A stretch of DNA of 64,000 nt, taken from positions 106,826,001 to 106,890,000 of the forward strand of contig NC_082717.1 of assembly GCF_030144855.1 (NCBI RefSeq), written 5' to 3'. A program made the translations under genes and the position numbers. The notes below the pieces were generated by a model that was not told where the DNA came from, made no database searches, and worked only from the letters and a program-made list of their open reading frames with translations. Source of the DNA: Hypanus sabinus (Eukaryota). Position 1 is the first letter of the stretch. Every line of letters begins with the position of its first letter. This document shows positions 3,571-17,554 of this stretch, one piece after another.

Positions 3571-4023
3571 AAATAAATATACTTCGAAGATTAAACTTAA
3601 TTAACTCGATATTATCAATGGTTCGGGGTCATGTGACGGCTCCTAGCCACACATCTGTAATTATTTACATTCTGACAGATCTACAGATTTATTTTGCTCT
3701 TGGCGGACTTTTCAAATTTCAGGATTTCCGGTGGTCTGTCGGTTAGTTTTGGCGCTTGTCCAGTTGCCGCCCGTTCATTGGTGATTGAGCTCTTTATTGG
3801 GCTTTTCATTCACCAATGAGATCAGGCGATTTACCGCCAATCAACCGCCGCCGACGGTTTCAAAAAAACTAATTTTTCGGTAAAATGAGGCAATTTCTTA
3901 AAGTGGGCAGATAAATACTTTTTTTTATTTCAGAGGAAGAGATCCGCTTTAGACAGAGTTTTAAGCCCTCGTCTACGACAGACACACAGAACGGAAATCC
4001 CCCGGACCCACCCCAGCCGGTGC

Positions 4024-4065
4024 TCAGCCCTTCCACAGACAATCTGAGTGGCTCTGAAAAGAGCC
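4024..4065 (-). terminator. Histone 3' stem-loop and histone downstream element of H2A copy 1
   Basis: GGCTCTTTTCAGAGCC at 4050-4065 (minus) followed by purine-rich GGAAGGGCTG. Confidence 0.95.
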
Positions 4066-4095
4066 TTTGGGTTTCTAAATTGTCGCTTTGTCTCT

Positions 4096-4485
4096 TTACT
4101 TGCCCTTGGGGTTGGCGGGCGCGCCGCTTTTCTTGGGCAACAACACGGCCTGGATATTGGGCAGCACCCCGCCCTGAGCGATGGTCACCCCTCCCAGCAG
4201 CTTGTTGAGCTCCTCGTCGTTGCGGACGGCCAGCTGCAGGTGTCTGGGGATGATGCGGGTCTTCTTGTTGTCCCGGGCCGCGTTACCGGCCAACTCGAGG
4301 ATTTCAGCCGTCAGATACTCGAGCACAGCGGCCAGATAGACCGGGGCTCCGGCACCCACCCGCTCAGCATAGTTACCCTTTCTCAGGAGCCTGTGAACAC
4401 GGCCCACCGGGAACTGCAGTCCGGCCCGGGACGAGCGAGACTTGGGCTTGCTCTTGGCCTTTCCGGTTTTTCCTCGTCCACTCAT
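4096..4485 (-). CDS. H2A: Histone H2A, replication-dependent (copy 1)
   Basis: Intronless 129-aa ORF with canonical H2A fold ([11 protein letters not shown]...[15 protein letters not shown]), 3' stem-loop, TATA and CCAAT promoter. Confidence 0.98.
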
Positions 4486-4529
4486 TTTAGCCGATCTTTC
4501 ACAAAGAATGAGGAAATGATTCCGTATTC

Positions 4530-4706
4530 ACCAATTTTATAGCTTCTAGATGACTGCGGAAGGACACTTATGATTGGTGGTGCAATGCTTTCTCCGATTG
4601 GTGATGTGGAATCACCCAATCAGCGAGCTGACGATTCTCCAATAAGCAGACGGCAGCAAAAGAAGCGCGAAAAATAACTGTCACTCCCCAACAGGATATG
4701 ACATTT
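4530..4706 (-). promoter_or_regulatory. H2A copy 1 promoter
   Basis: TATAAAA at 4535-4541 (minus); CCAAT boxes at 4573 and 4597 (minus sense) and at 4616 and 4639 (plus sense). Confidence 0.85.
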
Positions 4707-5029
4707 GGGAAAAAAACTTCAAAGTATATTTATTATAGCCTTAAAATTCATCTCCTTAGAGGGAGCCACGAAACAAAGAAACTCGATAGAACGCATTAAA
4801 AAAGATCGTCAAATACCCAATGTGCAAAAATGAACAAATTGTGTAAACTCTAAAAAGTAAACAAATTAAAGTCAGAATTAGAGTCAGGCCATGGGGACTT
4901 ATCCAACTTAATGCTCTTTACTTCTACTTTACCTTGAAATGTGCTAGCATATCAATTCACTTGGTATTGATCTCCCTATCCCCCACGTGCTTCTCTTTGT
5001 TCTATGTAATAGTCAACACTGTGCTGTAG

Positions 5030-14684: not shown

Positions 14685-14995
14685 AACACCTGCATCTCCT
14701 CCAAGGCCATGAGCATCATGAACTCATTCATGAACGATATTTTCAAGCGCATCACAGGTGAGGCTTCCTGCCTGGCCCATTACAAGAAACAGTCAACCAT
14801 CAGCTCCCCGGAGATCCAGACTGCCATGTGGCTACCACTGCTCAAGAAGCTGTCCAGTCTCGTCGTGTTAGAAGGAACAAAGGTGGTGACCAAGTACACC
14901 AGCTCAAAGTGTATTTCCGCAGGATCCTGACAAAACAAACTGAAAACCCAATGGCTCTATTAAATGCCACACACAGTTTCCATGGAAGAGTTGTC
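14685..14995 (+). pseudogene. H2B: Histone H2B pseudogene, 5'-truncated
   Basis: [17 protein letters not shown]...[13 protein letters not shown] matches H2B from about residue 51 to the end; stop codon lost (TGT at 14910); decayed stem-loop GGCTCTATTAAATGCC at 14953-14968 and HDE-like GGAAGAGTTG. Confidence 0.92.
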
Positions 14996-15959
14996 TTAAT
15001 ATTTCGATAATACTTTTCTATATCTGCTTCAATATTTCTCTTTCGAGAGATAATATTCATCAGGATCATGTTGATGACAATTAGCCATCCCCCTGCCTGG
15101 TGACAATCCTGCACACTGAACTAACATGGATCTTCCCCTTCTTCTGCCCCGTTAGTTTGTCTTCATCTTCAAATACTTGTCCCACTGAACTCTCCATTGA
15201 CAGAGGAAGACACTGAACAGGATTTTTGTATGCTTTCTGTTCTTCATGTTCTAGTGAATGCCTTTTCGTTACTCCATTTCCAAGGTGCCCTGAATCTACA
15301 TCAGAATAAATTAACGGTGATATCGCTGTTTCTGTGCTTCCACCACAGATCATGAAGTGACCCTTCCATGATGTGATGTGTTTTTGCAAAGAGGGACACA
15401 TTCCCAGAGACAGTTACGGTAGAATTAATTCACATTCTGTGCGGACAGTAACCTGGATTACGTGAGTGGCCATGCAGGGAGTCCACGTTCACAGAGAGGT
15501 TCTAATTGCTTTCCTTTGGTCTGTTGTTTAATTTAATTTTTTCTTTAGTGCCAAACTGAGGAGGCTGAGTCATCACCCAAGCATATCAAAGCAGCAGGGC
15601 CCGGATCCGAGAACCAGGAATGAGCACCAGGCCAGATTGAAAGTGTCAGTCGGTCAGGGCTGGGGTGAGGGAGGTGTTCAGCTTGCTGCTCGGTGGGGTT
15701 TATTTGTCCCTGTGCTGAACTGAGGCTGTGGTCTGTAACTAACAGGCTCCTGGACGGGCTTCGTGGCTGTGAACTCATTTTCATGAACTTTAGTTCTGAA
15801 TATTATTTATTTTTTATTTTTTGCACGATTTGTTCTTTTTTGCACATTGAGTGTTTGAGTCTTTTTTAATGAGCTCTGTTGGGTTTCTTAGCTTTGTGAC
15901 TGTCTCTAAGGAGATGAAGCTGAAGGCTGTTTGATAAAAAAATACCTTGAAGTTTGTTC

Positions 15960-16181
15960 AAATTTCATATCCTGTCGGGGAGTGACAGTTATTTTTCGCG
16001 CTTCTCTTGCTGCGGTCTGATCATTGGAGAATCAGACAGCTCGCTGATTGGGTGATTCCACATCACCAATCGGAGAAAGCATTGCCCCACCAATCGTAAG
16101 TGTCCTTCCGCAGTCCTCGAGAAGCTATAAAATTGACGAATGCGGAATCATTTCCTCATTCTTTGTGAAAGATCGGCTAAA
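15960..16181 (+). promoter_or_regulatory. H2A copy 2 promoter
   Basis: Inverted paralog of 4486-4706; TATAAAA at 16126-16132 and four CCAAT boxes in both orientations. Confidence 0.85.
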
Positions 16182-16571
16182 ATGAGTGGACGAGGGAAAA
16201 CCGGAAAGGCCAAGAGCAAGCCCAAGTCTCGCTCGTCCCGGGCCGGACTGCAGTTCCCGGTGGGCCGTGTTCACAGGCTCCTGAGAAAGGGTAACTATGC
16301 TGAGCGGGTGGGTGCCGGAGCCCCGGTCTATCTGGCCGCTGTGCTCGAGTATCTGACGGCTGAAATCCTCGAGTTGGCCGGTAACGCGGCCCGGGACAAC
16401 AAGAAGACCCGCATCATCCCCAGACACCTGCAGCTGGCCGTCCGCAACGACGAGGAGCTCAACAAGCTGCTGGGAGGGGTGACCATCGCTCAGGGCGGGG
16501 TGCTGCCCAATATCCAGGCCGTGTTGTTGCCCAAGAAAAGCGGCGCGCCCGCCAACCCCAAGGGCAAGTAA
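16182..16571 (+). CDS. H2A: Histone H2A, replication-dependent (copy 2)
   Basis: Protein identical to copy 1; the true start is the MSGRGK ATG at 16182. Confidence 0.98.
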
Positions 16572-16601
16572 AGAGACAAAGCGACAATTTAGAAACCCAA
16601 A

Positions 16602-16643
16602 GGCTCTTTTCAGAGCCACTCAGATTGTCTGTGGAAGGGCTGA
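16602..16643 (+). terminator. Histone 3' stem-loop and HDE of H2A copy 2
   Basis: GGCTCTTTTCAGAGCC at 16602-16617, then GGAAGGGCTG. Confidence 0.95.
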
Positions 16644-17554
16644 GTACCGGCTGGGGTGGGTCCGAGGATTTCCGTTCTGTGTGTCTGTCGTAGACAAGGG
16701 CTTAAGCTCTCAACTCTAAAGTGTATTTTCTCCGCAGAAAAGAAAAGGAATTTATCCGTGCACTTAATTTAGATTTACCAATTTTCTGCCCATTTTTACC
16801 GAAAATGAAAATCGCCCCGCTTCCTGGTTAATACAGAGAGAGATTTGATTGGCGGTAAATCGCCTAATTTAATTGGCGAGTGTAAATGCCCAATCAGTGC
16901 GGCCTTATTCACCGAAAACCGTGAAGTCCTCCCAAGAGTAAAATAATTTTATAGTACGGTCTAAAAGTAAATAACTACAGATGTGTGCCAATAGGAGCCG
17001 TCACATGACCCTGATCAATGTACATAAGACAACGTAAATTTATTAAAATACGGACGCCACACAACCTTTAATTTCATCATCTTGTAGGATCCCAAAGTGA
17101 ATTATATAACCTATGAAAAACTACACACAACAAAGACCGACAAACGACCAATGTGCAAAAGAGGACAAATCGTGCAAACAAAAATAATATTAAGCATGAC
17201 CCTCAGAATCCCCGAAAAATAGTTCTCCGGTACGAGAGATTTGCATATTGAATCACCGATTAGTACAAATGCTGATTCATGGAACATGACAGGTTTTTAT
17301 TATGTAAAGCGTATTATGTTATGGACGGTTCACAAACTGCGGTCGGGGCCGAGACTGTAATGTGAAGTTGTTTTGTGAAAGGACCGTGAGCCTATTCTGA
17401 ATCTCGAGTCGACTCAGAATAAGACTCATGACAACTTCAAAGTACCTAAATAACCACCTTCACGGCAATTAAACCGCATCAGCAACAACAAAAATCTGCC
17501 TCACAAGAATAAGCTCTTTGTGTAAAGTTGCGTGTGCGTGTCTGAAGATCGAAC

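Follow-up and report, generated by a model that had tools for sequence, protein, structure and literature searches.

Organization of the locus

The window, that is the whole 64-kb stretch of the Atlantic stingray (Hypanus sabinus) genome analysed here, contains two H2A genes in inverted orientation, separated by an 11-kb spacer (Table 1). Both loci carry an intact, intronless open reading frame of 129 aa; the assembly GCA_030144855.1 lists a protein of exactly this sequence, and the H2A product is called there with the Pfam domains Histone and Histone_H2A_C. Behind both genes stands an RF00032 stem-loop scoring above the gathering score, the 3' element which, rather than a poly(A) signal, characterizes the replication-dependent histone genes. 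Four H2A places are on record in the assembly, and the one without any other called gene within 10 kb is taken to be the present locus. An H3 gene is also present in the window and, together with the H2B relic of the spacer, it places the H2A locus in a histone cluster. The window includes a run of N at 50337-50472.

Table 1. Coordinates of the features discussed in the text (positions in the window; a dot stands for features without orientation).
Feature	Position	Strand	Remarks
Arm 1	3623..4864	.	Orphan promoter remnant, H2A-1 and its promoter
Orphan H2A-promoter-like CCAAT cluster	3713..3843	+	Behind H2A-1, aimed at its 3' end
Histone 3' stem-loop, H2A-1	4025..4070	-	Rfam RF00032, 35.7 bits
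H2A-1 coding sequence	4096..4485	-	129 aa, intact; exact protein on record in GCA_030144855.1
H2A-1 promoter	4486..4707	-	Read directly; 93.7% identity with arm 2
38-bp minisatellite, 1.9 kb	4997..6868	.	Between H2A-1 and block copy 1
Block copy 1, exon-shaped	6933..7025	+	Core 6955-7018; donor position reads AT
L2-like LINE RT fragment	7119..7367	-	tblastn match with the LINE ORF at 45463-46254, E 1e-19
Decayed terminal C2H2 ZNF exon (pseudogene fragment)	10119..10635	-	tblastn to the intact ZNF; acceptor read
Copied part of the ZNF intron	10636..10994	-	Homology to the intact gene ends at 10994
CR1-like LINE RT fragment	11110..11291	+	"Intron" side of block copy 2; three colinear weak tblastn pieces, E 0.002-0.02
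Block copy 2, exon-shaped	11321..11411	-	Core 11394-11328; AG and GT intact
5'-truncated L2-like LINE	11426..11959	+	88.6% to 34929-34393; lies 14 nt from block copy 2, on its other side
H2B pseudogene, C-terminal two thirds	14667..14930	+	Pfam Histone E=9.8e-11; same strand as H2A-2
Arm 2	15803..17014	.	H2A-2 unit; matches arm 1 inverted
H2A-2 promoter	15959..16181	+	H2A-1 promoter mirrored
H2A-2 coding sequence	16182..16571	+	Protein identical to H2A-1
Histone 3' stem-loop, H2A-2	16597..16642	+	Rfam RF00032, 35.7 bits
Intact ZNF large exon (comparison)	43200..44823	-	Holds the whole CDS, 338 aa

Two CCAAT and two ATTGG boxes are found in each H2A promoter. Upstream of H2A-1, beyond a TATA box at 4534-4541, the CCAAT boxes occupy 4573-4577 and 4597-4601 and the ATTGG boxes 4616-4620 and 4639-4643, all within about 70 nt, and this 4573-4643 set is mirrored in arm 2. 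The orphan CCAAT cluster resembles the inverse of 4571-4707 (64% over 140 nt, E 2.5e-9 in a small search space) and has its mirror counterpart at about 16845-16930.

By blastn the two arms match over 973 nt at 91.8% identity, with some outlying pieces. The identity is unevenly distributed: it reaches 99.7% in the coding sequence and 98% in the 3'UTR, still amounts to 93.7% in the promoter, and falls to 82% in the outer flanks. Inverted arms with a core of high identity and diverged flanks are what an inverted duplication with gene conversion would leave, and this profile suggests that conversion has operated between the arms; on the other hand, selection on H2A could produce the same pattern of identity in the coding region. 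No further arm-to-arm homology was found between the arms and the exon-shaped blocks described below, nor across the centre of the palindrome.

These data agree with a preliminary description of the locus, which had presented the H2A genes as inverted copies (3620-4706 and 15960-17015), each with a promoter whose CCAAT boxes face both ways and which lacks a divergent H2B partner. The arms actually reach about 157 nt further inward; the boxes were verified by direct reading; and no divergent H2B gene is present, the same-strand H2B pseudogene having been missed.

Contents of the spacer

Besides the minisatellite, the spacer contains several transposon fragments and relics of two genes. The H2B pseudogene lies 1.25 kb upstream of H2A-2. 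The L2-like RT fragment begins 93 nt beyond block copy 1, and block copy 2 is placed between a CR1-like and an L2-like LINE. The sharp edges of this second copy probably result from transposon junctions on either side, although the mapped part of the CR1-like piece ends at 11291 and leaves 30 nt before the block. A weak hint (E 0.08) of the same CR1-like piece on arm 1 was lost when the DNA alignment was compared with shuffles. Among the runs found to contain the region, none is recorded as RNA; the reads came from three DNA runs and from one tiny run guessed to be RNA, which gave transposon pieces only. The DNA depth rises to about 150-750 times the unique level in the bins 10900-11299; in the 200-nt bin that holds the block, the depth is dominated by the neighbouring LINE.

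The second gene relic is a decayed terminal exon of a C2H2 zinc-finger (ZNF) gene, located on the minus strand 690 nt downstream of block copy 2 and without a counterpart on the other arm. The preliminary description had noticed it downstream of the minus-strand block, at 10190-10640; it is real, with slightly different limits. Two to three fingers are recognisable, in two frames, and stops interrupt all three frames. The relic begins at an acceptor homologous to that of an intact ZNF gene of the window, whose CDS is recorded in GCA_030144855.1 as one uninterrupted range of 1017 nt. The similarity extends into the intron: 10614-10816 matches 44800-44999 of the intact gene, and 10856-10994 matches 47537-47673 with a score of 43, for a maximum of 16 in shuffles. 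It stops inside the intron, at 10994/47673, and neither the upstream 1.4 kb of the intact gene nor its CpG-island promoter (49101-49600) has a counterpart near the relic; indeed there is no CpG island between 4700 and 16000. Judged from its sequence, the relic is a dead, promoterless and 5'-truncated copy of a terminal exon and of a portion of the adjoining intron.

The exon-shaped block

The block occurs exactly twice in the window, in mirrored orientation, and never in shuffled sequences. The two copies are 85-87% identical over 93 nt, so that the block of 64-67 bp previously noticed on the far side of both promoters is a genuine mirrored pair, somewhat longer than first described; its core is identical at 59 of 63 positions. 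This core is better kept than the neutral flanks of the arms, where 383 of 466 positions are identical (Fisher P=0.011, binomial P=0.008). On the acceptor side, each copy shows a pyrimidine tract and an AG. The splice sites had been given as intact for the minus-strand copy, which holds: its donor, CAG/GTAACT, ranks in the top 0.06% of the 9-mers of the window according to a rough donor matrix. The same is not true of the plus-strand copy, which reads CAG/ATAAGT and has lost the G of the donor. The near-consensus donor CAGGTAACT stands exactly at one edge of the similarity—sites with at most one mismatch to it occur at 8.6e-5 per nt—and the pyrimidine tract and AG stand at the opposite edge. 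This position of the splice signals makes the block more exon-like than expected of a random remnant, and on these signals it may have been used, or may still be used, as an exon. Its acceptor implies that it would be an internal exon and not a first one. No coding constraint appears to act on it, since copy 1 is open in all three frames and the copies differ by an indel of 1 nt.

Several identities were considered for the block and rejected. It is not a structured, known or tRNA-derived RNA (no Rfam hit, fold z-scores of 0.2-1.6, no tRNAs), nor a derivative of the 38-bp minisatellite, as no profile match was obtained within the array. It does not belong to an adjoining LINE either: the contigs of other L2-like copies carry unrelated sequence before 11424, and the RT similarity ends short of the block. 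Finally, the block cannot be upheld as an exon conserved upstream in ZNF genes, because neither an nhmmer profile built from both copies nor a Smith-Waterman search matched anything upstream of the intact ZNF, whose coding sequence lies in a single exon.

Discussion

Origin of the locus

Our preferred reading, to which we give a probability of about 0.6, is that a replication-dependent H2A unit was duplicated long ago in inverted, head-to-head orientation and that the spacer is decaying; the blocks would be remnants of the palindrome, and no ZNF unit under the H2A promoters would use them as exons. Each arm would carry the H2A gene with its CCAAT/TATA promoter and, in addition, the remnant of a further H2A promoter. 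Gene conversion between the arms, purifying selection, or both, would have held the core (about 4000-4707 and its mirror) at 94-99.7% identity, the flanks having meanwhile drifted to 82%. The decaying DNA of the spacer comprises the 38-bp minisatellite, pieces of LINEs, the H2B pseudogene and the promoterless, 5'-truncated copy of a ZNF terminal exon and part of its intron. The 93-bp blocks would most likely be what can still be recognised of a palindrome that was formerly longer; they occupy mirrored positions, colinear with the arms, and their identity (87%) differs little from the 82% of the unconverted flanks, which makes them possible leftovers of this kind. Some gene may have used them as a small non-coding exon in the past; today they lie between transposon fragments.

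The blocks could alternatively derive from an old interspersed repeat of low or middle copy number, for instance the heavily truncated tail of a LINE or a SINE, that landed twice independently of H2A, of the palindrome and of the ZNF. Such an origin would be in keeping with a spacer mostly made of transposon debris, with the LINE fragments around both copies and with the lack of coding constraint; moreover the core identity of 94%, higher than that of the arm flanks, is expected if the copies are younger than the palindrome. Nevertheless a repeat of this type should hardly be limited, in a transposon-rich window of 64 kb, to two copies which both fall in the 11-kb spacer and in mirrored order; the block is part of neither adjoining LINE, and it displays no tRNA-like signal, Rfam signal or RNA structure. 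Besides, one of the DNA runs yields a contig over 11314-11451 whose depth (14.8) is that of single-copy sequence; it covers block copy 2 and indicates that this is no young repeat present in many copies. We consider the repeat origin rather unlikely, and a remnant of the palindrome the most likely source of the block.

The preliminary description had gone further and proposed that a spliced ZNF transcription unit occupies the H2B position, under histone-type, S-phase regulation, and that the whole module was duplicated as a palindrome. Each H2A promoter would then be bidirectional and its far-side transcript spliced through the block, reaching the ZNF exon on arm 2, so as to give an S-phase-coupled ZNF or else a ZNF-pseudogene transcript or lncRNA. 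If true, this would be a rare capture of a non-histone unit by a histone promoter. Some observations go in this direction: the CCAAT boxes in both orientations, as in shared promoters; the exon shape of the block and its well-kept core; the common strand and correct order of the relic and block copy 2; and the fact that, on the minus strand, the CpG island nearest upstream of these two is the H2A promoter. However, the ZNF is dead, 5'-truncated and restricted to one arm, and its intact paralogue has a CpG island of its own and no block. Between the blocks and the H2A TATA boxes there are 2.3 and 4.6 kb, compared with a span of 133-970 bp for bidirectional histone promoters (PMC1794435); this interval holds the minisatellite on one arm, and LINE debris and the co-directional H2B pseudogene on the other. 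Within about 1 kb of the H2A promoters, the opposite strand shows no gene or open reading frame. On their far side, the alignment of the arms contains no H2B octamer and no conserved TATA, a TATA-like run of arm 1 not being kept in arm 2, and the distal arm sequence common to both copies offers no donor of at least 6 bits. The donor of block copy 1 is lost. The run guessed to be RNA, which is tiny and therefore weak evidence, has a depth of zero over 14700-15499 and of about 1 at 15900-16099. Altogether, a ZNF transcript driven by H2A seems very improbable. Of the palindromic module, the mirrored and colinear blocks remain compatible with a longer palindrome; its ZNF part, found on one arm only, finds no support.

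A variant would keep the block as a live non-coding exon: the H2A promoters would fire away from their genes and be spliced through the block, yielding mirrored S-phase-coupled lncRNAs and, on arm 2, a ZNF-pseudogene transcript. It would account for the core of the block being better kept than the arm flanks; reasoning from sequence features, we consider it scarcely probable.

We come back to the palindrome with a decaying spacer. Under this reading the locus illustrates the inverted duplication of a histone gene in the transposon-rich genome of a cartilaginous fish, where the H2A gene and its promoter core stay nearly identical between arms while the surroundings, copies of H2B and ZNF included, decay. 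What is seen resembles common genomic debris more than a zinc-finger gene placed under the control of a histone promoter. It also calls for caution: a short repeat with convincing splice sites, placed beside a ZNF relic, is not necessarily a ZNF exon.

Comparison with known systems

Divergent H2A-H2B pairs, known in vertebrates and yeast, share bidirectional promoters of the span mentioned above (PMC1794435). The stingray H2A promoters resemble them by their TATA box, by their several CCAAT boxes in both orientations and by their location in a histone cluster. They differ in that no partner gene is found on the opposite strand within 1 kb, that the arms share neither a TATA nor an octamer on the far side, and that the sole H2B sequence is a pseudogene, 1.25 kb off and oriented in the same direction as H2A.

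The ZNF relic, a finger exon with its adjoining intron, decayed and devoid of promoter, is comparable to the partial-duplicate (processed-free) pseudogenes of C2H2 ZNF genes that occur in regions rich in ZNF and histone genes. It is separated by 33 kb from an intact paralogue of the same orientation, and nothing notable distinguishes it from ordinary ZNF fragments.

In the palindromes of sex chromosomes, inverted gene duplicates are kept alike by gene conversion from arm to arm. The stingray arms are small (about 1.2 kb) and the 11-kb spacer is long relative to them; conversion, in their case, is deduced from the identity profile only. Like those palindromes, on the other hand, they are inverted, nearly 100% identical over the gene and its promoter and 82% in the flanks, and they enclose a unique spacer.

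The inverted H2A duplication

This part of the Atlantic stingray genome is rich in histone genes, and the H2A and ZNF products encoded in the window have exact matches on record on a GCA_030144855.1 contig. The inverted H2A duplication proposed by the preliminary description is confirmed: two H2A genes transcribed away from each other, one Rfam histone 3' stem-loop behind each, lie within the arms of an inverted repeat. Besides a TATA box, each promoter has four boxes of NF-Y type packed into about 70 nt, CCAAT and ATTGG occurring twice each. The arm alignment gives a stepped identity profile, from which we infer that the duplication is old and that gene conversion and/or selection has kept the core of gene and promoter similar in both arms. 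Inward of 4864/15803 and across the centre, no arm-to-arm homology is left except the block, a 93-bp exon-shaped repeat.

Features of the H2A arms and their spacer (window positions)
Feature	Position	Strand	Remarks
H2A gene 1	4096-4485	minus	129 aa, same protein as gene 2
H2A gene 2	16182-16571	plus	129 aa, same protein as gene 1
Inverted repeat	3623-4864 vs 17014-15803		two arms, opposite orientation
CDS			arm-to-arm identity 99.7%
3'UTR			arm-to-arm identity 98%
Promoter	4486-4707		arm-to-arm identity 93.7%
Outer flanks, both sides			arm-to-arm identity 82%
CCAAT-rich cluster behind H2A gene 1	3713-3843	plus	resembles weak inverted copy of H2A promoter
Mirror cluster behind H2A gene 2	~16845-16930	minus	resembles weak inverted copy of H2A promoter
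A/T-rich element, 50-65 nt	4798-4864, 15803-15867, 17129-17189		three copies around the arms
38-bp minisatellite	4997-6868		1.9-kb array, promoter side of block copy 1
Block copy 1	6933-7025	plus	85-87% identity to copy 2
Block copy 2	11411-11321	minus	85-87% identity to copy 1
CR1-like reverse-transcriptase fragment	11110-11291	plus	one side of block copy 2
L2-like LINE, 5'-truncated	starts 11426		other side of block copy 2
ZNF relic	10119-10635	minus	decayed copy of terminal C2H2 finger exon
H2B pseudogene	14667-14930	plus	Pfam Histone, E 9.8e-11

The inner ends of both arms are marked by the A/T-rich element (core ...CCAATGTGCAAAAA.GAACAAAT.GTG.AAAC...), probably a small high-copy mobile element since its depth bin in the DNA runs reaches about 600 times the unique level. 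The two CCAAT-rich clusters are each directed at the 3' end of their H2A gene, and a ATTTGCAT octamer lies at about 17240. Besides those at the two H2A units, the first 22 kb hold one CpG island, at 17501-18200, about 1 kb past the 3' end of H2A gene 2 (GC 0.51-0.54, observed/expected CpG 0.69-0.91). No ORF or in-window homologue accounts for it, and it does not resemble the ZNF island at 49101-49600; an unannotated transcript could have its promoter here. Elsewhere, an H3 ORF (33083-33493, minus; R2Q, R40H, S57T) is annotated as a 136-aa histone gene and has no Rfam stem-loop match at gathering score.

The exon-shaped block and its surroundings

The block is real and occurs in two mirrored copies where chance predicts none; a profile built from both found no third in the window. 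Similarity begins in a pyrimidine tract followed by AG and ends just past a donor-like motif. The intact AG/GT claimed for the minus copy is confirmed: the donor of copy 2, CAG|GTAACT, scores among the best 0.06% of 9-mers in the window (by a rough donor matrix); copy 1 keeps the pyrimidine tract and AG, its GT being lost (CAG|ATAAGT). The core is identical at 59 of 63 positions, above the arm flanks (P about 0.01). As the copies differ by a 1-nt indel and copy 1 is open in all frames, the block gives no sign of coding constraint; neither significant RNA structure, Rfam match nor tRNA-like features were found in it.

Transposon pieces lie on both sides of copy 2, so that its sharp similarity edges are probably due to transposon junctions, although the CR1-like piece can be followed only as far as 11291, 30 nt from the block. 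Other copies of the L2-like LINE carry unrelated sequence before its start point. Around copy 1, the minisatellite—found on arm 1 only, with 67-79% matches between units—fills most of the gap to H2A gene 1, and an L2-like reverse-transcriptase fragment lies 93 nt past the other edge. A LINE ORF at 8456-8935 (minus) matches Pfam ALKBH8_N (E 5.9e-10); an AlkB gene was rejected there, the match falling in a reverse-transcriptase-type transposon ORF.

A search of sequencing runs for the region found none recorded as RNA. Read coverage over 10100-16099 was taken from three DNA runs, which come from this species or a close relative (unique depth about 10-17). Bins 10900-11299, on the CR1-like side of block copy 2, stand at about 150-750 times the unique level. 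A tiny run, guessed to be RNA, covers only transposon pieces, with depth zero at 14700-15499 and about 1 at 15900-16099, which is no proof of silence.

The ZNF relic

The relic has stops in every frame, with 2-3 fingers still recognisable, and no counterpart was found on arm 1. The acceptor at which it starts has a homologue in the intact ZNF gene (43200-44823), whose upstream intron was partly copied with the relic: 10614-10816 matches 44800-44999 and 10856-10994 matches 47537-47673, a LINE (45016-47530) separating the two stretches in the intact gene only. Homology ends there: around the relic nothing matches the next 1.4 kb of the intact gene or its CpG island (49101-49600). Sequence comparison thus makes the relic a fragment truncated at its 5' end and lacking a promoter, with the block outside the copied segment. 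No block copy was found in the intact gene, whose CDS is annotated as one uninterrupted 1017-nt range, so that any upstream exons would be untranslated.

In the sawshark Pristiophorus japonicus, the gene model P0117 (“zinc finger protein 79-like”, 589 aa) combines, in a single frame, a piece of retrotransposon pol, an H2A with slight damage and a series of C2H2 fingers. The model is probably an artefact of gene prediction where histone and ZNF sequences abound; nevertheless, it shows H2A and ZNF sequences as neighbours on the same strand in a second cartilaginous fish.

Origin of the block pair

The reading we favour, with a probability of about 0.6, is an inverted duplication of H2A, old and homogenised in its core, the block pair being a leftover of the original arms and perhaps a former small non-coding exon. 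The arms would once have been longer, block included; their gene and promoter core would have been homogenised while the outer flanks drifted, and the spacer would have filled with satellite, LINE, H2B-pseudogene and ZNF-fragment debris. Of the module supposedly duplicated as a palindrome, a once larger palindrome including the block is plausible; no support was found for a ZNF unit spliced from the H2A promoter. That the block is instead an old repeat fragment is less likely: in a DNA run, a contig at single-copy depth (14.8) extends across 11314-11451, over copy 2, which rejects a young high-copy repeat, and the window holds two copies only. Conservation above the flanks and near-consensus splice signals, which the leftover reading does not fully account for—a mild reservation—are the sole reasons to see in the block a live non-coding exon of a transcript fired away from H2A, a very improbable reading.

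Scarcely more probable is the proposal that the H2A promoter fires both ways, its far-side transcript being spliced through the block into a ZNF exon. The relic is dead, truncated and on one arm only, the intact gene lacks the block, and no conserved TATA or octamer was found on the far side of the H2A promoters. Since the block has an acceptor, an upstream first exon would be needed, and the distal arm sequence common to both copies yielded no donor of at least 6 bits. Nor does the H2B position appear to be taken by a ZNF unit. The H2B pseudogene (about residues 55-125, several substitutions, 5' side cut by transposon sequence) lies 1.25 kb upstream of H2A gene 2 and is absent from arm 1; being on the same strand as that gene, it was rejected as a divergent partner. 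Bidirectional promoters of histone genes are 133-970 bp long (PMC1794435), whereas the two blocks are separated from the TATA boxes of H2A by about 2.3 and 4.6 kb.
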